A DNA stretch of 64,000 nucleotides, taken from the NCBI GenBank assembly GCA_937625935.1, contig OW569349.1:310001-374000 (forward strand), read 5' to 3'. The position numbers were made by a program, and so were the translations under genes. The notes below the pieces were generated by a model, which was not told the DNA's origin, did not search any database, and saw only the letters and a list, made by a program, of their open reading frames with translations. Shown here piece after piece: positions 29,137 to 58,441 of this stretch; position 1 is the stretch's first letter; each line of letters opens with the position of its first letter. The stretch is from Tetramitus jugosus (Eukaryota; Protista; Heterolobosea).

Positions 29137-32123
29137 TTTTTTTTTTTTTTTTTTTCCATACAACATTTGTTGCCACTTTATTCTATACACCACAGTGAGA
29201 CATGATTCCGCTCAGCACCGTTAGGTGATGAGCAGTGTTTCATCTCTCTTCACAACAGAATTGATATACACCTTGTATAGTGCCTTGATGCAGGCACGTT
29301 TGGTTGAGTCGACGACTCCCTTAATCCTTTTCTCTGCCTCCCTCTCCTTGCGTCCTTTAAGCTTCAGTTCCTCCAGAAGTTCCCCCCTAAAGTCTTCCTC
29401 TTTACCCATCAGACCTTCCAGAAGTCCCTCGGCAGATCTTTTGACGTTTCGTGGTTGGATCTCCCCTCCCACAAACAGTGCATCGTCGAACCATAGAACC
29501 AACTTGGCAGTGTCTGGTGGTTTCATCCTTTTCAACTTGTCTTTTAGTTCCTCTGCCACTTTACTTCTTGCTGCTTTGGCATAATCACACTCAACCAGCA
29601 GATGAATGATGGTCTCGGGGCTTTTGCCGCAAAGAGAACATGTAACATCACCTATGGCATTGTACAACTTCTGCATGACCACTTTCGTATGCAAGGTACC
29701 ACTCCTGACCTGGTGGTAGAACCACAGCTCCTTCCTATCCAGTCCAAAAGGACATTTCAAGAAATAGTTCCACTCCACTGACTTCTGTAACTCCGAATCA
29801 AGCCACCATCCTCCATTCAATCCAATAAATTCTGTCCTCTGTTTTACAAATGATTCCACTACTCCTTCTCGAATGTTGGGATTCTCGTTGACCACACCAT
29901 TAGCTAGCACTTTGATTTCCGTCTTACTAGTTCTTCTAGCAAGCAGCGACTCATTGCACGGTTTTCCAAGCAGTTCCAGGTAGGCTTGCACTATTCTGTA
30001 CTTTGCCGGACCAATCCCTTTCATATGGTATCTTTTCTTTGCCTCCATGTAAGGTATGACCATAACTCCGTCCCCATCGAAGAGTTGGGAGTTTCTCGAG
30101 ATGCCAGACCGCAAGAGTATTCTTGACACATGAGTTGGGAGGCACCAAGCAATGCTACACTTCTCACACTCGTGAGCATTGTCAGTATTGATGATAATTC
30201 GCGACGAGTGGAGGAGTTTGGCACACCAGGCGAGGTATGTATGCTTAACTTCACGAAGGCGAGTGCTGGATTTGAATAGGCTCGATCTAACGAGCGTTTG
30301 GCATTGCTTGACATCATCAAGCGTATCCAGCAGTAGTGTTCGTGCTTCAGTGTCCTTCTTTCCAGACAACATACTGGCGACAAATGCGGCGGTCCTTGCA
30401 ATTAAACTTTCCTTGAAGTCATTGAGTCCAACGCCACCCTTGTCCCTATCAACCGAGAGTAGAACCGAGGGGAACCTCTTGAGGGAACCTGACCCGTGCT
30501 TCACTGCTTTGCGTCCGATTCCTTCCACCTCATTAAGCCACTTCTTGGGCCAATGGGTGAACTCGGAAGCAAAAAGGAACACGGGATGAACACAGGTGTT
30601 GATAATCCTAGCTGTTTGACTTGGACTCAACTTCATAAACCTCAGTCTGTTCAATATCCGCAACACCTTAGCCTTAGCTTGTTTCTTTTGGACTTCCGTG
30701 TCCCCACTCAGATTAGTGAAAAGCCCCAGTGCACGGAACCCCGTGTATCTGTCTTTTGCCGCAATTTCTTTGTTGGCCACTCTGATCACTGGTTTGTTCT
30801 CGCTCTTACGTGCAAAGAACTCCAGCTTATCAGGATGCATACTAAGACCCAGCCAACCAAGAGCTCTGTGCATCTCATTGGCCGTTCTTTCAATATCCCC
30901 AAGGTCATCACTGAATAGATTGCAATCATCAACGTATGCCACATTCCAAATTCGTTGTGACATAGCACGATATCCGGAGGACTTCATCCGAGCATAGAGC
31001 AGCACCAGTTGATGCACGATGACGTACGTTGTCGGCGATAACGAGTCACCTTGTCTTGTTCCGCGGTCGATGAAGATCCTACGCGACCGACACTGTGTTC
31101 CAATCGTAGCCACATTTGACTCCAACATATTTTGTATGAGAGATACGATGTGCTCAGGGTAGTTAAAGAACCGGTAGGCCGCTGTGATAGCATTGTGAGG
31201 GACGCTATCAAATGCCTTGGAGATATCAGTTAACAGCACATACAACTGTCCATCCTTCCTGTTAGCATGGTCGATTACACCACGTATGATAGAGAGCTTT
31301 TCTCTAATGTCTCTCATCTTTCTCCCCCCTCCTTGCGTATTGGTGAAGACTCCTGCCTTCTCAGCCGCATCAGAAATTCTCTGGTTTAGCAATCTGGTGA
31401 AAACCTTTGATAGACCACTGAGTAGGCAAATGGGGCGGAAATTGGATATAGTCATAGGACACCCCTTCTTATACGCTGGTACAATAATACATTGCTTCCA
31501 CTTGCTTGGGAAAATTCCTGTCTGAACTATCCTATTGAATAGCGTTGTCAGCACCTCCGCGAATTCATGACTGTAGTCTCTCTTCTTAGTAGAGCTCAGC
31601 TTCAGCATTTCATTGCATACTCTATCAATTCCCGGGGCCTTGCCGTTCCGCAGCCATTTCAAGGACTGCTTCACTTCTGCCACTTTGAATTGGGAGAAAG
31701 ACTGCTCCATGTCTTTTCCATTGCGTGGCAATTCGTTGAGGAAAGATATATCAGCTATATCATACTCAAACACTTCTTCGAAGTACCTAGCGGCATGTTC
31801 AGCCACTTTACTCGGGTCGGTTACAATGCACTCTCCCTCTTTATAGCTCTTAAACCTCAGCCTCTGTGACCTCTTACCCGTTGCTGCATTGAAGAAAAAT
31901 CTCGGGTCGATGAACTCAGTTGTTCTGGCTTTGTACAGCCATTTGGCAAACTTTTTGTTCGCTCTACGAGCCCTTTCCTCTTGTATTAACAACTCTATCT
32001 TCGCCAGGGTTAACAAGATCCCCTCCTGAGAGTGCACCTCACCATAGGCCTTACACACTCGCTCCGCCCCTGGTGAACCTAACCAGTCAGAGGACAATCG
32101 CTCCACAAGACTCTTTCTATCTC
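29137..32123 (-). mobile_element. 5'-truncated non-LTR (L1/Tx1-like) retrotransposon with poly(A) tail and 15-16 bp TSD
   Basis: Poly(T) at 29137-29155; AGAGTATAAGCTTGG(T) at 29122-29137 and 32124-32139. Confidence 0.93.
29221..32106 (-). CDS. Reverse transcriptase ORF2, endonuclease domain lost by 5' truncation
   Basis: KAPGID, FRPICLL, DISKAFDSV, GTRQGDSLSP, YVDD and a C-terminal CSLC....ETIIHLLVEC knuckle; the frame is open up to the junction. Confidence 0.95.
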   Translation of the reverse strand: MERLSSDWLGSPGAERVCKAYGEVHSQEGILLTLAKIELLIQEERARRANKKFAKWLYKARTTEFIDPRFFFNAATGKRSQRLRFKSYKEGECIVTDPSKVAEHAARYFEEVFEYDIADISFLNELPRNGKDMEQSFSQFKVAEVKQSLKWLRNGKAPGIDRVCNEMLKLSSTKKRDYSHEFAEVLTTLFNRIVQTGIFPSKWKQCIIVPAYKKGCPMTISNFRPICLLSGLSKVFTRLLNQRISDAAEKAGVFTNTQGGGRKMRDIREKLSIIRGVIDHANRKDGQLYVLLTDISKAFDSVPHNAITAAYRFFNYPEHIVSLIQNMLESNVATIGTQCRSRRIFIDRGTRQGDSLSPTTYVIVHQLVLLYARMKSSGYRAMSQRIWNVAYVDDCNLFSDDLGDIERTANEMHRALGWLGLSMHPDKLEFFARKSENKPVIRVANKEIAAKDRYTGFRALGLFTNLSGDTEVQKKQAKAKVLRILNRLRFMKLSPSQTARIINTCVHPVFLFASEFTHWPKKWLNEVEGIGRKAVKHGSGSLKRFPSVLLSVDRDKGGVGLNDFKESLIARTAAFVASMLSGKKDTEARTLLLDTLDDVKQCQTLVRSSLFKSSTRLREVKHTYLAWCAKLLHSSRIIINTDNAHECEKCSIAWCLPTHVSRILLRSGISRNSQLFDGDGVMVIPYMEAKKRYHMKGIGPAKYRIVQAYLELLGKPCNESLLARRTSKTEIKVLANGVVNENPNIREGVVESFVKQRTEFIGLNGGWWLDSELQKSVEWNYFLKCPFGLDRKELWFYHQVRSGTLHTKVVMQKLYNAIGDVTCSLCGKSPETIIHLLVECDYAKAARSKVAEELKDKLKRMKPPDTAKLVLWFDDALFVGGEIQPRNVKRSAEGLLEGLMGKEEDFRGELLEELKLKGRKEREAEKRIKGVVDSTKRACIKALYKVYINSVVKRDETLLIT

Positions 32124-32166
32124 AGAGTATAAGCTTGGTGTAATTTTAGGATTTGCAATTACATCA

Positions 32167-32237
32167 GCTGCTTTAGTATAGTGGTAGTACACGGGATTGT
32201 GGCTCCCGCAACACCGGTTCGATTCCGGTAGGCGGCA
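32167..32237 (+). tRNA. tRNA-His(GTG)
   Basis: Acceptor stem GCTGCTT/AGGCGGC+A, anticodon arm CGGGA-TTGTGGC-TCCCG, T arm ACCGG-TTCGATT-CCGGT, followed by a T4 run. Confidence 0.96.
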
Positions 32238-48238: not shown

Positions 48239-49582
48239 ATGAACTATCCTAGCAACAGCAATTTAACACTGGACGCAACTAGACATCTCTCCTCCTACAC
48301 TCCCACACACTTTCAACAACAACAACAATACAATAGCAACAACACGATGCTGCAACGCCCTCAAACACCACTCTACTCTGCTGCCGCAGCATCTACAATG
48401 GACATTCGCTCGACTCTCTCTCCCTCCACAGGCTACTATCTATCACCATCAGCAGCAGCATTAGCCAACAATCAACAACAACAACAACAATTACCTACCA
48501 CATCATGGGGTGTCTCATCATTATCACCTTCACCCTTTTCACGAAATTCAATGACAAATCGCATCCCAGGATTAACAACAACAGCAATGGCAGCCTCTGC
48601 GACTTCGCTCTCTCCTACCACTCATCATCAATTGATGAAACCCTTGGCTACTACTACTACTGCCACGAGTCCAATGATGGGTTTCATGGTAGGACCAATC
48701 TCTCCATCAGCAACAGCTACCATTGCACCAACAGCAGTTGCACCAGACTCTGCTTTCAAGCTCTCGAAATTCTTGCAACGCAGTGCATCCAAGCAATCAC
48801 CTTCGATGACAACAATGATGCCACAACAACAACAACAACAATTGCAGTCACAAGCTCAACAACAACAACAACAGTATTCCTTTAGCTTCTCTTCACCTGC
48901 ACCAACAATGACTACGGCTGCTGCTACTACTGCGACTACGACTGCTGCAGAGACAAAAGACACACCTCCACCAACAGAGAGTATCACTGATTTGTTGACA
49001 CTGAACGCACCAATTACATTGGACAGTGGCAGTAGCTCAAAACCATCATCTGCTGCTGCTGCTGTATCAAAGCAGTATTGGGTCAGAATATTCGGATTTC
49101 CATCCTCCAAAATATCGATTGTGCTATCTGATTTCTCCGCACTCTGTGGTGGAAGAATATTGAATCATGTGTCCAGTGAAGGCAACTGGGTAGATGTCGC
49201 ATTCGATAGTGAGAGTGCTCGTATGAAAGCACTGGAGAGAAACGGACAAATGTTGGACAGTTTGAAGCACTTTGTGATTGGTGTGTTGAAATTGAGTGAT
49301 GATGTTCACGGCAGTAGTGCCCATGTGGACAATAGCAGCAGCAGTGATGAGCGAGCAGTGCCAAAGAGACTGTACATGATTAAGCGACCAAATGATATTG
49401 TGATGAGTGATGAACGAGGTGAGCAAACCCTAAAGAGAAAGAGAAGCATGTACGATGACGAACCGACAACAGAGATAACTGCATCATCGTCCTCACTATT
49501 AACAACAATGGCAGACGAAAGACCATTGAAACGACAAAGATCATTCTTTTATCAAATGTTGGAAAACATTTTCAAGTTTTGA
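48239..49582 (+). CDS. NUP35: Nucleoporin Nup35/Nup53-like
   Basis: PPPTESI motif, RRM WVRIFGFP...GNWVDVAF...ALERNG and a C-terminal amphipathic helix. Confidence 0.75.
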   Translation: MNYPSNSNLTLDATRHLSSYTPTHFQQQQQYNSNNTMLQRPQTPLYSAAAASTMDIRSTLSPSTGYYLSPSAAALANNQQQQQQLPTTSWGVSSLSPSPFSRNSMTNRIPGLTTTAMAASATSLSPTTHHQLMKPLATTTTATSPMMGFMVGPISPSATATIAPTAVAPDSAFKLSKFLQRSASKQSPSMTTMMPQQQQQQLQSQAQQQQQQYSFSFSSPAPTMTTAAATTATTTAAETKDTPPPTESITDLLTLNAPITLDSGSSSKPSSAAAAVSKQYWVRIFGFPSSKISIVLSDFSALCGGRILNHVSSEGNWVDVAFDSESARMKALERNGQMLDSLKHFVIGVLKLSDDVHGSSAHVDNSSSSDERAVPKRLYMIKRPNDIVMSDERGEQTLKRKRSMYDDEPTTEITASSSSLLTTMADERPLKRQRSFFYQMLENIFKF

Positions 49583-49587
49583 GTAAA

Positions 49588-49680
49588 TTAAGGTGGCGGT
49601 CCACTGTCGATCAAACCATAATAAAAAAATTATGATTTCCCGACACCTTAACGCTCCTACATAATCGGGATTTACATAGC
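49588..49680 (-). ncRNA. Predicted Fanzor omegaRNA scaffold; guide would continue into 49587 and below
   Basis: Lies between the Fanzor stop and the element end. Stem TCCCGA/TCGGGA has a loop 8-mer (TTAAGGTG) complementary to the terminal CACCTTAA, predicting a pseudoknot. Confidence 0.65.
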
Positions 49681-51558
49681 AGCTTGATGGAGTGAGCCTT
49701 GGAGGTGTTCCACCATTTTGATTAATTCTTTTGCGACCTTTTTCTTCCTCTTGAAGGCATCGGGACGTGACTGTCCATCCATTTCTGTTCTCAGTAGATG
49801 GAGCATGTTCTTGGCCGCATTGATGTCTCTGTTGTGAGTCACTAAACATTTAGTGGTTGCACACTGTTTAACTCCTCGGACGACAGAGACATTCAACGTT
49901 CCATTCTTGTCTATTCTCTTATGCTTGACTGGCTTGAGTTGACAATGACAGCCATTGCAAATCTGAGAAGTCTTATACTCATCCACCATATGGACTTGGA
50001 AATGTTCAGTCATTCTCTTCAACAATTTGACTTTAGGACTAACCATGTTACCCTTATAACTATTCTTGAATCCACCATTGCCCATCCCAATCAACATACT
50101 TCTTCCTTTCGACTTCTTTTTCAAATCATTCATCACACCAGAAAGAGTCTTGTCTCTCATCATGTAACTGTCCCAATTCAGTTTCTTCACCTTTGAAGAA
50201 CAATAAAAGTCCAACAAATCTTCCTCGACTTCCAAAACCGAATCAATATGTTCTAGGTACAAGTCATTAGACGAGACATTAGAAGTCTTGATCGAGTTGT
50301 GGAGTTGATCAACATTCTTCCCACTCTTCTCATTCCACTGCTTTTGGAATTTCAATAATCGTTTCTTGTTCTTGGAATGGTGAGAGAGGTGATGGTACGT
50401 CTTGTTACTCAACTCCCATTTGTTACCATCATTATCAACACAAGACAATAAGGTAACAATACCGGGATCAATACCCACCAAGTATTCGGATTGAGGGATT
50501 GGAGGTTTTGGATCAACCTTTTTCTTCTTGGGTGCCTTTTCCTCTGACTTCTTCTTTTTCACCTTGTGGTTCACATGGTTATCAATCAATTGATGTCTAA
50601 CAACCACAGAGGCCTGTATACCATCTGTTCTCACAGAGTCAATCTGCAACTTTCTTGAACCGACATTCAAACAATCAAGGTTGTATGAAAATACTGGGCC
50701 TTTTTGGATCTTGTCTAACAATTTTTGAAATTCTTTGGTTCCAATTTCGATACATCTACACCTAAAATGACACTGTGGTAACAAAGTAAATGATTTCCTG
50801 TCTTTAGAGATCAAATATTTTTGAATGTGCCAGTAAAGTTTGAGAATTTGATTAGGATTCTTTTCGATGTAATCTTCACTCATTGGTTCTTTTGTGCCAA
50901 CAACGTCATTCACTTCTTTGATCAATTGAGGGATTAAATAAATCAATTCTTGAGGAGGCAGTTTTTGAAAGTCATACACCTCAGCCGTAAAGATTAATTT
51001 TCTAATGATGAAATCAATCACTCTTCTTTGTTCACTTTTTGGAATCTTTAAAGATGGATCAATCAATTCTTCCATTCTCAGTCTCAAATAGCGCTTCAAT
51101 CTTTGCTCCAAAGTGAATTGAAACATATTGGAGATATTAGTGGCCAATGATTTGGCAACATAATTGAATGAATCTGAATAGCCATTGTATATTTTTCGCA
51201 ACTTTTCGATTTCATCATTCATGTTGATGGTGGCATTGATTCTTTCAACATTCTTGGTTCTATCAACAGAGTTTCTTCCAAAAAGGACAGAACAAATTCT
51301 TTGAATGAAGCCTTGATTCACCTCAGGAATATTCACTCGTGATTCCAAGCACTTCAAAACAAAGGAACTGAGGAGCCTAGAGATTCTAATAGCTGCTCTA
51401 GTAATTCCTTTTGCTCTTTCTTCAATCACTGGAACTAAAGAAGGATGATTCTTCAATAGAGATTTCAAACCAACCTTGATGACATAATGAGAAGAATAGT
51501 TTTCCTTATTGACTCTTGTTCTCTTCCTCTTCCCACTCTTGGGTACTCCTCGAGGCAT
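49672..51558 (-). CDS. Fanzor (eukaryotic TnpB-family RNA-guided endonuclease), Fanzor1-like, 628 aa
   Basis: RuvC-I GIDPG, RuvC-II VDEYKTS, Zn finger CNGC...CATTKC, RuvC-III NRDINAAKN; basic NLS-like stretches; no stops or frameshifts. Confidence 0.92.
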   Translation of the reverse strand: MPRGVPKSGKRKRTRVNKENYSSHYVIKVGLKSLLKNHPSLVPVIEERAKGITRAAIRISRLLSSFVLKCLESRVNIPEVNQGFIQRICSVLFGRNSVDRTKNVERINATINMNDEIEKLRKIYNGYSDSFNYVAKSLATNISNMFQFTLEQRLKRYLRLRMEELIDPSLKIPKSEQRRVIDFIIRKLIFTAEVYDFQKLPPQELIYLIPQLIKEVNDVVGTKEPMSEDYIEKNPNQILKLYWHIQKYLISKDRKSFTLLPQCHFRCRCIEIGTKEFQKLLDKIQKGPVFSYNLDCLNVGSRKLQIDSVRTDGIQASVVVRHQLIDNHVNHKVKKKKSEEKAPKKKKVDPKPPIPQSEYLVGIDPGIVTLLSCVDNDGNKWELSNKTYHHLSHHSKNKKRLLKFQKQWNEKSGKNVDQLHNSIKTSNVSSNDLYLEHIDSVLEVEEDLLDFYCSSKVKKLNWDSYMMRDKTLSGVMNDLKKKSKGRSMLIGMGNGGFKNSYKGNMVSPKVKLLKRMTEHFQVHMVDEYKTSQICNGCHCQLKPVKHKRIDKNGTLNVSVVRGVKQCATTKCLVTHNRDINAAKNMLHLLRTEMDGQSRPDAFKRKKKVAKELIKMVEHLQGSLHQAAM

Positions 51559-51958
51559 ACTAATGGTTGTTTGGTTTGATAAAAATGAGATATGATTGTT
51601 ATTGTATTTGTTGTATGGTGTATTTGTTGTGTGTTGTATTTGTTGTGTGAGATGAATCAAACAGCGAAAAAGACAGCGCTTTTTAAACCGAGGTAGATGG
51701 CCGTTGCCGTTGTAAAGACAGTCTCAACGGAAATTTTTACAACTGCACCAATTCCGCAGCTTAGAGGAAACTGATACAACATTTATTGTATTTTTTTATA
51801 ATATATCCACCTATCTATCCAATCTTGAACCAACGAAAAACTTTCTCTCTGACACGACAACAACAACAACGAAAAACACAAGTCGCACAACGAACATCAA
51901 CAACAACAACAACAACAACCAAATCAATCAAAAAAGATGGAGAGTCGACAAGAGGTGT

Positions 51959-52606
51959 CTATTCGCAGTGTGCATTGTAGATTCTCTGAGCAAGTTTCAA
52001 GTAGGAGAATACAAGCGGTACCAATGTGTATTGAATTCTCTTGACACCACCCTGACCAAAGTGCTTTCTGGCTGCGGCCAAAACTTTAAACAATTGATCA
52101 GTATCGCTATTATCAAACAAATGAACCAATCTGGCAATCAAGTTCTGTTCTTCTTCGAAATCTTCGAGCAATGTTGCAGCTATAGGTGAGTCGTCAGAAG
52201 GTGAGAATGTTGTCTGGTCTTCCTCATCCTTCAACAGTGGACGAATCAAATCAAACAGTTTGTTCACTTGTTCAAATGTTGAAATCTTGTGTCCATTGTC
52301 AAGTGCGCATCTCACAATGCTCAGTACAATAAACTTTCTCTGTTCATATCCAAGAGAATGAATAATATCACCATACTTCTCCAACTTCAAAACTGTTAGC
52401 ACATTGTTGTATGACTCGAGTGGCACCAACAACAATCGCTTCAACATGTCTACAATTTCATCTGAAGCAAGTGCAGTGCTATTCAATTGACTAGCAATGT
52501 TATTAATAATCTTGTTGACATAGTCAGTGTTATCAGGATATGTTTGAAGAGCAAGTGTCATCAATGAGATCTGAATACTCAAGTTATCGGACAATTCAAC
52601 ACCTCT
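51959..52606 (-). pseudogene. VPS35: Captured internal fragment of the retromer subunit VPS35
   Basis: YPD..DYV, LL..PL..YNNVLTVLKL, DFEEEQNLIARLVH and ARKHFGQGG.KRI.YTL.PLVF match the middle of VPS35; N- and C-terminal parts are absent. Confidence 0.88.
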
Positions 52607-52849
52607 CTAATGGTATCAATAGTAGGACAGAATTTGACAAACGTCAGAAAACTCATACTCATCATCAGGTCACTCGCATTCACGATGTCCTTCAGAGTGT
52701 TTGTTTTCTGTTTTTTGCAAGTTTTTTTTGATGAAAAAAATCAATGATGGGTAAATTTATACGATTTCTCCTATTAAAACGATTTCTTCAGTGGACGGCC
52801 ACCTTAAACAACATTTATTTTTGAGAGCAATATCCATGATACACTCTTT

Positions 52850-55800
52850 CTATTGCATCAGCTTACCTGATCTTCTTTCCTTGCTCTCCTTGGCCTTCTT
52901 GACTGGTTGATTCATGTCTTCTCTCTTGTCACCATACTGTTTGTCTCCTCTTGTTGCCTTGGGTCCGTACACGTCGAGATCGCTCGATTCAACAGCCAAA
53001 TTCTTGAGGAATCTCTTCTTTCTTCTCGTTTCATAGCCATAGAATCGCTTAGAGAATTCAGTGCTCAAGTCACGAATGGCCAAAAGAAGAATATCGTCCT
53101 CTGGTATATTCATGCTGTCCAAAGAGTTTCTCAAATTACGCAAATCATTGTTCACTTGATTCAAGTGAGTTTTGGCAACGTTAGCAGAATGGAAGGAATT
53201 ATCTCGGCAGAGTCTCTGAATGTGACCATGTGAGAAGAAATCAACAGCATATGAGTTGAGCATTTCAGATTCGAGAGACACGTGAGGAATGATTGATGAG
53301 TCGATCACCATAGTGTGCTTCACAGTAGCCAACAATTTCTCAACAGTTGAGTATTGGTCATTGTTACCAGACAAGGCAGCAAATGAGGAAGTTGAGTGGT
53401 TTTGATGTCTTTGTTCCTTCAATCTTCGAACAATCTCTCCTTCATCAACCTCTGGCTCCTCTTCTTCCTTCGTTGCTGGTTCTTCTTGAACAACTTCGAC
53501 TGGCTCTGGAATCTCCTCCTTCTCTTCTTCTTCTTCGTCTTCATCCCACATCAAGTCTTCGTCATTGATCTCTTCCTCTGCAGGCTCTTGTGGCTCTTCC
53601 GGCTCCTCTTCCAATGTACCACCTGCAATCGTTTCACCTGGTACATACTTAAATTGAATCTTACTCAATGGGAGCTCTGTATCAATATTTTCTTGAGGAT
53701 GAGCACAGGAATAGCTTCTGACAAACTCTGAATAAATTTGCTTCACAAGAGTCGAGTAACCATGGTAGGCATCAGAGATACCACTTGGTAATGGAGCAAC
53801 AGTTCTACACATGACATCCTTCTTGAAAATCTTGATTCTGCCAAAGAAATAGGCAAGTACTGCCAGCAATCCCTCCAATCTCTTCTCATACGCAATTTCC
53901 TCATCCTTCAACAAGTTGTGCAGCATGTCGTTTCTAGCAAAGAAGGTCATCATGAAGTTATATGGCTCGTGATAGTGCATACGAGAAATGAAGCTTGCAA
54001 AATTGAGAGGAGTTCCATTGGGATCAACATAACCATTTCGAAGCAAAAATTCTGTAGAATATCTAAAGTAGTGCTTGACCTGATGCAAAGATTGAGGCAT
54101 AATCTTACCCAACACGAACAAAGGTTGCTGAAGAACTCTCAGATAGTCCGTACGAACATTTTCTTCCTTCTCTGGACTATGCTTCAAAGTTTCATAGTAT
54201 GAGATGAGCATTCTCAAGAGGAAACTTGGCTTTAAACCCATGGATCCCATAATATTTGGAGGAGCAGACGTCATATATCTGTTAATGGTTGCTTGATCGA
54301 TACCGTAGAGGCAAACTCTTCCCAAACTGTCAAACCCTCTTCTACCCGCTCTACCAGCACATTGGTAAAATAGAGTTGTATCCAAGTATTTAGATTTTCC
54401 AACAATAACAACAGTTCTCGCAGGCATGTGAATACCAAGAGCAAGAGTACTGGTGGCAATTACAACAGGCAATGCTCTTTGTCTGAATAAGCGCTCAACT
54501 GCTTTTTGATAGTTTTCGTGAATAGCGGTGTAATGCACCGAGATACCATACTTCAAACCTTCAATAAACATTTCATCAACTAGTCCAGTTAACTCATCAC
54601 AAACAGATGCAATTTGCAACAATGCTTGAGATCTGTCTTTGTCAGTCTCCCAGAGATTGATTCTATTTGCTTTCACATAAATTAATAGAGTCTCGAGCAA
54701 CTTATCGATAAAGTATCTAGAGAAGTAGAAACAGATTGCAGGCAATTGTCGTTGTTGTCTCAAGGACATAATCAACTGGCAGAAGTGTTGTTTGAGGAAG
54801 TGCTGACTTTCAAAAACACGCTTGCTGTAATGACTGTTCATCAATGAGAACGATGAATCCAAGTCTTTTCTGATATCTGCGAAAATACTCAACATTAACT
54901 CTTGATGTGCTTGAGATCTAGCATACTTTTGAACTGTACTTGTCACAAGCTTGCGGTATTGGAGTAACTTGTTTCTATCTATCAATCCAAAGTCCTGTGA
55001 TAATTTAGATGGATCACACTCTTCAAAAATGTTCTCAACACCCATCATAGCACACACTCTGTTGGCAGAATCAAAGAATTGAAGACATTCAGCAGCTGAG
55101 AATGTTTGCAGTCTGTCAATCTCCTGATCAACAATTCTATATGCATTCAATACAGAGAGTGGATGAATGGAATGTAGCTTGCTAGGTTGATCTTCAAGAG
55201 CTGGTTGGAACACCTGGAATTCTAGAGGTTGTGGTCTATCCTTGTGTTCGACGAGTTGCACATCAGATTTGTTTAGACTTAACCATTGAGTGAACTCCTT
55301 AGGATTTCCAATTGTAGCAGATAAGGCCAAAAATGGGCACTTAACCATCAACAAAATATGTTCCCAAACATCTCCTCCATCTGAACTCATACAGTGAACC
55401 TCATCAAGAATAATATATCTAAGTCTTTCTCTCCACTCAATATGCTCCTTTGTATGAGAGAACAACATAATCTCCAAACACTGAGGAATGGTAATCAGAA
55501 TTTGAGATGTTGTTACATTGATACGGTCGGACGATGTAAACATGCCCAACATTTGTCTAGACTCAGGATGAGCATACTTCTTCGCATATTTACTGTATAA
55601 CTCAGCAAATACTTGATTCGTCAGTGCTTTTGTTGGCAAACAAAATACAACCACAGAATCATCATTCTCTCTCAATATCTTCTCGATCACGTAAAATGCA
55701 ATAAAAGTCTTACCAGAGGAAGTAGGAGCAGAAACAAGAATAGATCGATCTCTATCAACATGTTCTATTAGCTCGTTTTGCCACGGATCTGGTCTGAATC

Positions 55801-58441
55801 CAAGATCAACCATTTTCTCTTTAATTGCTCTCTGTTTGGTACCCAAGTCCTCCATATGCACAACAGGGGCTGGTTCATCAGGGAAAAATTGGTTGATGGA
55901 TCTAAAGTTATAATTGTACTTCAGCTGCAATACATTCGGATCCCAAATATCTTCATCTCCATCAATCTTGATTGAAGAGCGCAAGTTAGGATGTTCGTCC
56001 AACATGTGCTCAGCCATCTTTCTAAATCCTACCTGATTTAAACTGCTAATTAACAGCTTATAGTGAGCATCAAAGGAGGTATCCCTCGTCTGTGACAATC
56101 TCTCTAAATACTCATAGATAAGGTTCACCACCTCTGTAACCTTATAGTAATCAAATTCTGATTTTGTCTGTGCAGCAACTGACACACAAACTTGAAGTTC
56201 ATATGAGAACAATTCGATGAGCGTATCTTCTAAACGTCGAACCAACTTCTCAATCGCTTGAGCTTCTGGGTTTGGTTTAGGAGCCTTCTTTCCCTTAACT
56301 GGTGCACTATTTGACTCCGCCACAAGAGCTTCAATCTTCCATGAGGAGCGTAGTAGGGCAGCTACTCCCTTCACATAGTCCTCTAAACTTCTTAATAGTC
56401 CGGGACTATTATCAGGAGAAATTTTGGAGACTGAAAGTGTCTTATACTGCTTTAAGATTGACTCCAACTCATCACTGTTCTTCTTAATGCTATTCTTAAG
56501 AATAATCGCCTCTGCACCCTTGGATGTCTTTGGCTTCTTTGGCTCTTTTTTCTTTGGTGCTGGTCTGCCACCCTTCTTACCGTTTGTATCCTCTTCTTCA
56601 ACAGGAATATCCTCAGTTTTATCAGTTTCGATAGCTCTCTTCTCATTGACCTTACCTAAACTCTCAGCATAATCATGAAGTCTCTTCAGAGAATAGTCTT
56701 GTGCCTCCTTTCTTCTCTTGAGAGCTCTCTGACTCAACTTAACATCTACTTCCTGCTTTGCTTTCCAGCTTTCGATCGCATAACCAGTGTGCTGGTCTTC
56801 TTCCTCAATAACAACACTACTCTTTAACTCTGAAAATTTTTCATCCTTCAGATAGTCATCGATCAATAAATTATGAATTGGGAGAAGCTTTGGTAAGCTA
56901 TTACCCACAGTCGACGATTGATCTTCAACCTCACAGTTCTCTTTTCTTGACAACAGATTCCAAACTGACTCAGGAATCTGACCGTCAATAGCAGCCTTCG
57001 ATGCCACAAATTGTTTCAGATGTTGTTGGCAGAGAGAGAATGCTCCGCTCAATGATGGCGGCAAATCCAAGTGTATGAATGTAGGTGTGCTATCTGGCTT
57101 TCCAACACCCTGCATTCTTTCATTCTGAATATGGAATAAAGTGTGAATTAATCTTCCATCATATCCGTCATAAAAATCAGGGAAAACTTCGGACTCTTGA
57201 ACTACGCGCAAGAGCTCTCCACTGAACTCATTCAGGAAAGAGTTAATCTCTGGATAAATATAATCGATCTTCTGAGATCTGTAAGCAAGAGGGATATTTG
57301 TTTGGAGCAACATGGAAGCCAATAACAGTTGGGAAAGATACAATCTAGAATAAAGTTCATCTGTCGTATTTGTCAATAGCTTACAACAAGCTACCAGCGC
57401 TGTTGCAATTCTAGCTCCATCAACTGAAAACAACTCGTCTTGTTTGGTCAATGTTTCCACTTCACCTTTTGTTTGTGTATCTGGAGTTGTCACAGCAATA
57501 TTTGAGGCATGAATAGCGCCAAAGCTCTGTATCGCATCAGGAACCATACCCATAACAACAGATGGAATATCAGTGTATAATTCAGTTGAAAACCCATATG
57601 CTCCCAATCCTTTGAAAGTCACATCACAAACAACTGGCACATTGTTCAATAGGAACGAATGATACATGAACAACAAGTTGTCATTCTCTCCAACAACGAA
57701 AGCTGGTCTAGATTGGAACAAGAATTGCTTCCAATCATCGTTTAGCCAATGGTCAAAAATATGACACTTCACATTCAACTTTGTCTTCAAATGGTTAAGC
57801 ATTGCTGAACGGGCAAGCAAGTATCGGTTGTTCATCTTCTCTGATCTAACTGTTACATTGTATCTCTTGAAACTGGTGAAATCAGGTCGAGATTGTATCT
57901 CTGCTGTCACATCGCATGGCGCTCTACCGGCCTTTTCAAAACAAACAATGTCAAATCGAATGGATCGATCCAACAAACTTTGAACAAAAGTTTCCAATCG
58001 ATATGTCAAGTGCAAAAATTGACCACCATGTTCGTCCCAATCAATAAAGTGAGACTTGGAGAGCAACTCTTGAAGAATTGCATCAATATCAACCAGAATA
58101 AAATCTCTGGCACCAGACTGACTCGGTAAATTATAGTATTCCATTCTCACATTTTTGTAGCATATATGAAGAATAAATTGATTCTTTAGCTCCGGTTCCA
58201 CATTCTCAAAATCCTTTAGATCCACGCCCTCTTCCTGCTTTAGCATGAGAGCTTCTGCTTCTTCTTCATCCCTCTCATCTTCTGAATTCTTGTCTTCACC
58301 TTCAAAATTTCTCTCGGCAGCCTCCACTTCTTCTGCGTCCACGTCTTCATCGGGCTCCTCGGCAACACTCCGAACGGGTTTGGTAGATGATTGAACTTGC
58401 GATGAACGTTCATCATCGTCATAACTATCTTCAAAATCCAT
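52850..58441 (-). CDS. Ski2-like DExH RNA helicase, DDX60-like
   Basis: APTSSGKT, PTKAL, DEVH, LSAT, TLALGIHMP and QCAGRAGRRGFD motifs; long N-terminal domain; 1863 aa. Confidence 0.88.
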   Translation of the reverse strand: MDFEDSYDDDERSSQVQSSTKPVRSVAEEPDEDVDAEEVEAAERNFEGEDKNSEDERDEEEAEALMLKQEEGVDLKDFENVEPELKNQFILHICYKNVRMEYYNLPSQSGARDFILVDIDAILQELLSKSHFIDWDEHGGQFLHLTYRLETFVQSLLDRSIRFDIVCFEKAGRAPCDVTAEIQSRPDFTSFKRYNVTVRSEKMNNRYLLARSAMLNHLKTKLNVKCHIFDHWLNDDWKQFLFQSRPAFVVGENDNLLFMYHSFLLNNVPVVCDVTFKGLGAYGFSTELYTDIPSVVMGMVPDAIQSFGAIHASNIAVTTPDTQTKGEVETLTKQDELFSVDGARIATALVACCKLLTNTTDELYSRLYLSQLLLASMLLQTNIPLAYRSQKIDYIYPEINSFLNEFSGELLRVVQESEVFPDFYDGYDGRLIHTLFHIQNERMQGVGKPDSTPTFIHLDLPPSLSGAFSLCQQHLKQFVASKAAIDGQIPESVWNLLSRKENCEVEDQSSTVGNSLPKLLPIHNLLIDDYLKDEKFSELKSSVVIEEEDQHTGYAIESWKAKQEVDVKLSQRALKRRKEAQDYSLKRLHDYAESLGKVNEKRAIETDKTEDIPVEEEDTNGKKGGRPAPKKKEPKKPKTSKGAEAIILKNSIKKNSDELESILKQYKTLSVSKISPDNSPGLLRSLEDYVKGVAALLRSSWKIEALVAESNSAPVKGKKAPKPNPEAQAIEKLVRRLEDTLIELFSYELQVCVSVAAQTKSEFDYYKVTEVVNLIYEYLERLSQTRDTSFDAHYKLLISSLNQVGFRKMAEHMLDEHPNLRSSIKIDGDEDIWDPNVLQLKYNYNFRSINQFFPDEPAPVVHMEDLGTKQRAIKEKMVDLGFRPDPWQNELIEHVDRDRSILVSAPTSSGKTFIAFYVIEKILRENDDSVVVFCLPTKALTNQVFAELYSKYAKKYAHPESRQMLGMFTSSDRINVTTSQILITIPQCLEIMLFSHTKEHIEWRERLRYIILDEVHCMSSDGGDVWEHILLMVKCPFLALSATIGNPKEFTQWLSLNKSDVQLVEHKDRPQPLEFQVFQPALEDQPSKLHSIHPLSVLNAYRIVDQEIDRLQTFSAAECLQFFDSANRVCAMMGVENIFEECDPSKLSQDFGLIDRNKLLQYRKLVTSTVQKYARSQAHQELMLSIFADIRKDLDSSFSLMNSHYSKRVFESQHFLKQHFCQLIMSLRQQRQLPAICFYFSRYFIDKLLETLLIYVKANRINLWETDKDRSQALLQIASVCDELTGLVDEMFIEGLKYGISVHYTAIHENYQKAVERLFRQRALPVVIATSTLALGIHMPARTVVIVGKSKYLDTTLFYQCAGRAGRRGFDSLGRVCLYGIDQATINRYMTSAPPNIMGSMGLKPSFLLRMLISYYETLKHSPEKEENVRTDYLRVLQQPLFVLGKIMPQSLHQVKHYFRYSTEFLLRNGYVDPNGTPLNFASFISRMHYHEPYNFMMTFFARNDMLHNLLKDEEIAYEKRLEGLLAVLAYFFGRIKIFKKDVMCRTVAPLPSGISDAYHGYSTLVKQIYSEFVRSYSCAHPQENIDTELPLSKIQFKYVPGETIAGGTLEEEPEEPQEPAEEEINDEDLMWDEDEEEEEKEEIPEPVEVVQEEPATKEEEEPEVDEGEIVRRLKEQRHQNHSTSSFAALSGNNDQYSTVEKLLATVKHTMVIDSSIIPHVSLESEMLNSYAVDFFSHGHIQRLCRDNSFHSANVAKTHLNQVNNDLRNLRNSLDSMNIPEDDILLLAIRDLSTEFSKRFYGYETRRKKRFLKNLAVESSDLDVYGPKATRGDKQYGDKREDMNQPVKKAKESKERRSGKLMQ

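Follow-up and report, generated by a model that had tools for sequence, protein, structure and literature searches.

A Fanzor1-bearing TTAA element family of Tetramitus jugosus and possible traces of homing at its truncated copies

Do the Fanzor nucleases of eukaryotes help the transposons that carry them to return to vacated sites? Fanzors are proven nucleases in vitro; according to a 2026 review, restorative homing has been demonstrated only for TnpB and IscB of bacteria, and no such test of a Fanzor is listed there (PMC13565253). The question is raised by an element of the heterolobosean Tetramitus jugosus found in a window of 64,000 nucleotides (nt), which is the whole stretch of DNA analyzed here (assembly GCA_937625935.1, contig OW569349.1, positions 310,001 to 374,000 of the forward strand). 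At positions 49592-52803 of the window, a 3,212-bp element flanked by TTAA at both ends carries a Fanzor1 gene and a fragment of the host gene VPS35. By itself, this copy is an ordinary member of a family of about 37 copies, comprising ~20 two-ended and 17 one-ended ones, in the searched genome of 26.35 Mb on 56 contigs. The family is best explained, with a probability of roughly 0.6 by our estimate, as a TTAA transposon with Fanzor homing, and the scars at its one-ended copies would be the outcome of aborted repair after a Fanzor cut. A compact genome with this many copies, each with a readable guide and target-adjacent motif (TAM), together with a countable scar predicting the cut position, makes the natural role of Fanzor testable.

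Predicted guides and the scars of one-ended copies

The region 3' of the Fanzor1 stop codon is predicted to fold into an omegaRNA scaffold (49588-49686, minus strand), in which an internal TTAAGG pairs with a terminal CCTTAA. The latter is formed by the end of the terminal inverted repeat (TIR, 49592-49606, with a GG terminus) and the adjacent TTAA target site duplication (TSD, 49588-49591), which is thereby predicted to be part of the closing stem. This closing stem is kept in both TIR types of the family and is also predicted for a relative with 57% protein identity, once the flank is included, and for one with 55% identity. Published Fanzor1 scaffolds include the TIR and the TSD, and the Fanzor1 omegaRNA reaches ~15 nt into the flank (PMC10711439). 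Since the closing stem includes the TTAA, the guide is predicted to begin directly after it, with TTAA as the TAM. For the window copy, the stem and the published reach place a predicted 15-nt guide at 49573-49587 (minus strand), in the host flank over the stop codon of a Nup35-like gene, and the TTAA on the Fanzor 5' side (52804-52807) would be the TAM in the empty allele. In the predicted fold, the nested closing stem accounts for the conservation of the omegaRNA region, for which a pseudoknot had also been suggested. An Rfam search with the predicted omegaRNA gave no match. The window copy carries a private 5-nt deletion near 49641, which is predicted to remove a middle helix of the scaffold and may impair its guide function; its closing stem is still predicted, with pair probabilities mostly of 0.8-0.97.

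Two TIR types, A (GGTGGC...) and B (GGATGTAG...), surround the same internal cassette. Counting only exact hits of one pattern that reads both ends equally, we obtained 38 type A ends, which form 12 pairs and leave 14 ends unpaired, all 14 of them at the omegaRNA side. One of the 14 belongs to a copy with a third type of far end; its removal leaves a ratio of 13:0 (p = 2.4e-4). Types A and B together give 15:2 in favor of the omegaRNA end (p = 0.002), or 15:4 in the worst case (p = 0.02).

Twelve junctions of one-ended copies were readable, leaving aside C2:615330 and those on contigs C27, C39, and C43. Five of them repeat TTAA and the start of the copy's own guide at the truncation point, with guide lengths of 9 nt (C48), 11 nt (C52), 12 nt (C3), ~20 nt with two substitutions (C24), and 21 nt with a one-base deletion (C25), whereas a match of TTAA plus 8 nt occurred in none of ~200,000 random windows. 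Only TTAA or TAA stands at the joint in another three junctions, and neither feature in the remaining four. The C10 junction also shows a flank match of 9 nt, which we left out of the count as most of it is microhomology. The two copies retaining only the far end have no mirror duplication. With 9-21 nt, the duplications extend up to the known cut distance of Fanzor1 enzymes of 14-21 nt from the TAM; published cuts fall after nt 16-17 and 20-21 for SpuFz1 and after 14-17 for GtFz1, whose TAM is TTAA. Among the five duplications, the two long ones (C24 and C25) are altered in the first 15 nt of the guide match, and the three short ones carry no change. Recutting of full targets would be expected to produce this pattern, although two cases prove little.

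A homing model, its rivals, and the mobilizer

In the model that we favor, the family is a non-autonomous cut-and-paste transposon that inserts at TTAA and depends on a trans-acting transposase, probably of the Kolobok type to judge from the ends of the element. Starting in the element, the omegaRNA would continue across the TIR and the TTAA as far as the flank. The empty site of each copy is thereby its predicted target, with TTAA as the TAM and the flank as the protospacer. Fanzor would cut this site, either on a homologue lacking the element or once the element has been excised, at ~14-21 nt from the TTAA within the flank. Up to the break, the TAM-distal end would match the occupied allele and could invade it, copying the flank, the TTAA, and then the element, whereas the TAM-side end would bear a non-matching tail, so that copying would begin at the omegaRNA end. 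Complete copying would restore the element. Aborted copying joined to the TAM-side end would leave a one-ended copy bracketed by TTAA and at most ~21 nt of guide-matching flank; such a piece could be no longer than the cut distance, and a target of full length would be expected to persist only when mutated. If repair switched to a sibling as its template, this would account for the mosaic copies and the exchange of ends, for the internal deletions, and for the single capture of VPS35 DNA.

The suggestion of the earlier note on this DNA that the element homes via Fanzor thus gains indirect support at the level of the family, from the end bias and the guide-side duplications, while the window copy itself bears the omegaRNA deletion. 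A further point in favor comes from another isolate, represented like all other isolates by assembled contigs. At the same TTAA site (L091 versus C26:158630, flank 99.3% identical), the element end in that isolate is of another subfamily; five diagnostic differences set it apart, a 2-nt indel lies within the guide region, and either in-place replacement or repeat insertion would be the cause. Several observations weigh against homing. Seven of the 12 junctions lack a duplication, the numbers are small, and four further one-ended copies stand outside the readable set. The scaffold of the window copy has the 5-nt deletion, no joint skipping the element at its locus (a single TTAA) appeared in four runs of assembled contigs, no transposase could be tied to the element ends, and the window itself contains an open reading frame (ORF) for a reverse transcriptase.

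That ORF brings up another account of the scars, in which a host reverse transcriptase of the non-long-terminal-repeat (non-LTR) class turned element transcripts into 5'-truncated retro-copies, and these are the one-ended copies, framed by ordinary 12-25 bp target duplications. Retro-copies are classically recognized by a truncated 5' end, a 3' end that is intact, and duplications of variable length, features that would fit here. However, the one-ended copies lack poly(A) and transduced donor flank, their 3' junction is invariably the TIR followed by TTAA, and the C3 copy spans 4 kb including an oppositely oriented ORF upstream of Fanzor, and we therefore give this account little credence. A better, though still unlikely, competitor makes Fanzor a passenger, the one-ended copies resulting from aborted gap repair after excision by the transposase, with nearby flank templated at the joint. 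Repair of an excision break would fit the three one-ended copies and the one opposite-ended copy whose joints show TTAA (or TAA) and nothing more, as well as the short filler and microhomology seen at several joints. Yet such a break has two equivalent TTAA ends, which predicts neither the 13:0 bias nor duplication on the guide side only, and it offers no reason for an upper limit of ~21 nt. The reverse transcriptase ORF (29221-32237; 961 residues; domain match with E 2e-27) lies just upstream of a tRNA-His gene and looks like a tRNA-targeting non-LTR element.

As for the mobilizer, the TTAA-specific TSD and the GG...CC (RR..YY) termini of all three end types agree with Kolobok, a superfamily with TTAA TSDs and RR..YY termini that has been reported from Naegleria and is separated by these termini from piggyBac with YY..RR (CC..GG) (Kojima and Bao, 2022, PMC9587614). 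The ends are hence of the Kolobok type, and they make Kolobok the probable mobilizer. The copies read contain no Kolobok transposase, and a search with the Mutator-like model PF20700 gave no match; as the controls were likewise blank, that search is uninformative. The genome does hold 12 matches of piggyBac type. Several of them, on L074, L075, and further contigs, lie in long open frames, two pairs scoring equally, and piggyBac also duplicates TTAA. Either a piggyBac transposase in place of Kolobok, or an extinct transposase with the family persisting by homing alone, could thus be imagined, and the blank Mutator-like search would suit both. We judge this improbable, for the GG..CC termini do not follow the piggyBac rule, and no shared ends lie within 1.5 kb of the match at the three piggyBac loci inspected. 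The piggyBac-type genes could nonetheless serve as Fanzor-less controls. For the third end type, no family was found. Of the earlier interpretation, a non-autonomous TIR element whose siblings share its ends is borne out, and neither search revealed a transposase partner.

The Fanzor1 protein, element anatomy, and captured host DNA

The Fanzor ORF (51558-49672, minus strand) is open for 628 residues from its ATG. It retains the catalytic triad D364 (50467-50469), E527 (49978-49980), and D578 (49825-49827) and the zinc-finger cysteines C534, C537, C566, and C571, in keeping with the intact RuvC residues and zinc finger read from the sequence beforehand. E527 precedes C534 by six residues, a spacing of the catalytic glutamate from the C4 zinc finger that is a Fanzor hallmark (PMC13565253). 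The protein also matched the expected nuclease profiles, scoring above the cut-off for Pfam Cas12f1-like_TNB, and SpuFz1 was the sole significant sequence match among solved structures (E 1e-16). An AlphaFold model with a mean confidence score (pLDDT) of 91.7 resembled Fanzor1 structures most closely, with Foldseek template modeling (TM) scores of 0.69 for SpuFz1, 0.63 for PpFz1, and 0.59 for GtFz1, compared with 0.21 for Fanzor2 and 0.25 for TnpB. By its modeled fold, the protein is a Fanzor1, and it presumably acts as an RNA-guided nuclease. Viral contigs searched with the protein gave no match. The loci L069 and L070 encode Fanzors 55% identical to it that have another 3' end and no TIRs; their contigs, gene-dense and intron-less, read like giant-virus DNA.

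The two ends of the element form an inverted repeat of 19 nt including the TTAA (49588-49606 and 52789-52807, 95% complementary), which reproduces the previously described 15-bp TIRs with one mismatch. The alternative boundary raised at the same time, a TA TSD with AGGTGG termini, yields filled and empty sequences identical to those of the TTAA/GG reading and is indistinguishable from it by sequence. Upstream of Fanzor lies a non-coding region (51597-51968) that is near-identical across subfamilies and presumably contains the promoter and the 5' untranslated region. It is followed by the VPS35 fragment (51969-52646, minus strand), by a remnant (52647-52747) of the region upstream of an F-box/CCCH/chromo-like ORF found in longer siblings, and by the far end (52748-52803) with subterminal TATACG-type repeats and the TIR with a CC terminus (52789-52803). 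An internal deletion of ~1.2-1.4 kb relative to the longest siblings joins within the remnant at a short direct repeat. As had been noted, the element is transposase-less: no other ORF of at least 80 residues inside it resembled a transposase in the ORF list or in Pfam. It is almost certainly a non-autonomous Fanzor1 TIR element carrying captured host DNA.

The element sits between the converging 3' ends of the Nup35/Nup53-like gene (48239-49582, plus strand), whose stop lies 5 nt from it, and a DDX60-like helicase gene (52850-58441, minus strand). The intergenic gap that holds it measures 51 nt (49583-49591 plus 52808-52849). RNA contigs of both neighbors end at or beside the TTAA copies, so the insertion probably spares both genes.

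The second cargo claimed earlier, a VPS35 fragment, was confirmed by a Pfam Vps35 match (E 6e-44) covering positions 330-526 of 726. The source gene is intact on contig C22, from which the fragment departs, over 681 nt, by six substitutions and by gaps totaling 3 nt (99% identity). The fragment comprises the 3' end of an intron (52607-52646) and the start of the last exon, beginning ~40-43 nt inside the intron as deduced from GT..AG and the reading frames. The intron remnant shows that VPS35 was captured as DNA. Copies on C27, C34, C50, and C16 hold the 3' part of VPS35 to just beyond the stop codon. As siblings thus contain the rest of the last exon, the original capture spanned the whole of it, and the sequences point to a single capture followed by amplification and deletion, not to acquisition copy by copy. 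The idea that the element moves host DNA consequently holds in a limited sense, with DNA-level cargo in many copies stemming from one event. No sign of function was seen in the VPS35 fragment. VPS35-Fanzor fusions, reported as open frames of ~960 residues, dissolved into separate ORFs upon direct translation of three long copies. Pack-MULE-type elements are likewise non-autonomous TIR elements with genomic host-gene fragments including intron sequence, and the fragment here is of the same Pack type, being genomic DNA with its source gene intact elsewhere. It differs in that a single donor gene was amplified later, in another superfamily and tied to an RNA-guided nuclease.

Genome-wide, about 20 full-length matches to the Fanzor protein were found, three at 99-100% identity and the others at ~65%. 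The two-ended copies comprise 12 of type A and eight of type B that share ends; the far ends read cover only a minor part of the 2.7-kb subfamily. All sibling termini read adjoin TTAA with unrelated flanks beyond, save that of C24:244718 with CCAA on one side, so the TIR/TTAA anatomy is not due to chance. A Fanzor-only minimal element of 2.17 kb with type A-like TIRs (L071:395-2568) is flanked by TCAA and TTAA, and such mismatched flanks may help to fix the chemistry of strand transfer. The window copy is an internally deleted version of type A copies of 4.3-4.6 kb, which hold an extra ORF of 161 residues (L016:871-1353, minus strand). This ORF has weak F-box, CCCH, and chromodomain matches below the cut-off, and a homologue search returned near-identical sequences and no distant ones. 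At locus L011 (C2, past 619300), a low-complexity reading frame runs on from shared element sequence and may represent a longer ancestral version. A 319-bp mini-element (C8:461447-461765, L047) combines an intact-looking omegaRNA end with the far end of the third type, which is unique and has TATACG repeats and a GG terminus; the mini-element is a candidate guide-only ghost locus.

The window copy is a mosaic. Its terminal 300-400 nt, upstream region, and cargo are 96-100% identical to siblings, while its Fanzor core (~49900-51590, minus strand) has 55-77% nucleotide identity to most of them. One sibling with the same core ends in type B, and the distribution of end types is at odds with the protein tree, a quick tree restricted to family members and homologues. 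By these comparisons, the window copy is recombinant, and the copies exchange parts. Its two closest copies differ in 14 and 12 of 628 codons, and one of the two has a stop.

The earlier note had further taken the window copy to be recently inserted and probably active, which our data do not bear out. Besides the missing skipping joint, look-ups via the flanking gene found no empty allele, and the omegaRNA deletion is private to this copy. Groundwater metagenome contigs extend from both flanks 21-24 nt into the element ends, below our 31-nt bridging rule but far beyond chance, which suggests that the groundwater population shares the insertion. At two sibling loci, the orthologous flanks found in other isolates diverge by ~0.7%, and other isolates carry element ends at flanks outside the loci examined here. 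On the scale of strain divergence, the family is young.

Relation to known Fanzor systems

The closest relative by sequence and fold is the SpuFz1 element of Spizellomyces punctatus (PDB 8gkh, 9ceu-9cez; PMC10432273). According to the parts of that report accessible to us, it is also a TIR element without transposase, with an omegaRNA from the stop codon to the end and with short derivative copies, and those parts report neither host-gene cargo nor one-ended scars. The two proteins share only ~18% identity, and the TAM of SpuFz1 is CATA as opposed to the TTAA predicted here. GtFz1 of Guillardia theta (PDB 9cer) shares the Fanzor1 fold and the TAM TTAA, but it is 15% identical and has an asparagine as the third catalytic residue in place of D578. 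The Fanzor1 elements of insect viruses (SfAV-1 and relatives), as described in the accessible portions of two papers, are non-autonomous with 13-bp TIRs, a 4-bp TTAN TSD, and no assigned superfamily, and their TIR and TSD form part of the scaffold; these portions report no cargo for them (PMC3627910, PMC10711439).

Kolobok elements resemble the family in TSD and termini (PMC9587614) and differ in that neither a transposase nor KolX was found here. Kolobok is unnamed among the Fanzor hosts in the 2026 review (PMC13565253), and the term is also absent from two primary papers, PMC10711439 being one of them. The family represents a divergent group of Fanzor1, for which TTAA is the predicted TAM and Kolobok the probable new host superfamily. 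The predicted layout, with the guide from the 3' flank, the TAM from the 5' flank, and a cut at the empty site, is that of TnpB homing in IS605 and IS607 elements, which has been shown in bacteria only.

The nearest precedent for the scars is provided by the Chlamydomonas Fanzor1-Helitrons CRe-1, CRe-2, and CRe-3, whose 5'-truncated, 3'-intact copies carry 7-19 bp duplications beside the target motif that are nearly absent from Fanzor-less relatives (Bao and Jurka, 2013, PMC3627910). These authors attributed the pattern to one-ended rolling-circle replication and did not decide whether Fanzor is its cause. One-sided truncation and short duplications next to the target motif are common to both systems, whereas the host is a Helitron there and an element with TIRs and a 4-bp TSD here, which leaves Fanzor as the shared factor. 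The odds seem to us about even that this family preserves, in a eukaryotic chromosome, a natural record of how Fanzor homes, in which the duplications would mark the cut, the end bias would reflect TAM-distal invasion, and template switching would swap ends, alleles, and cargo. The homing reading of such scars may have been stated before, the literature covered being open access. The same account would also explain the Chlamydomonas duplications of 2013 and would make Kolobok a new host superfamily of Fanzor.

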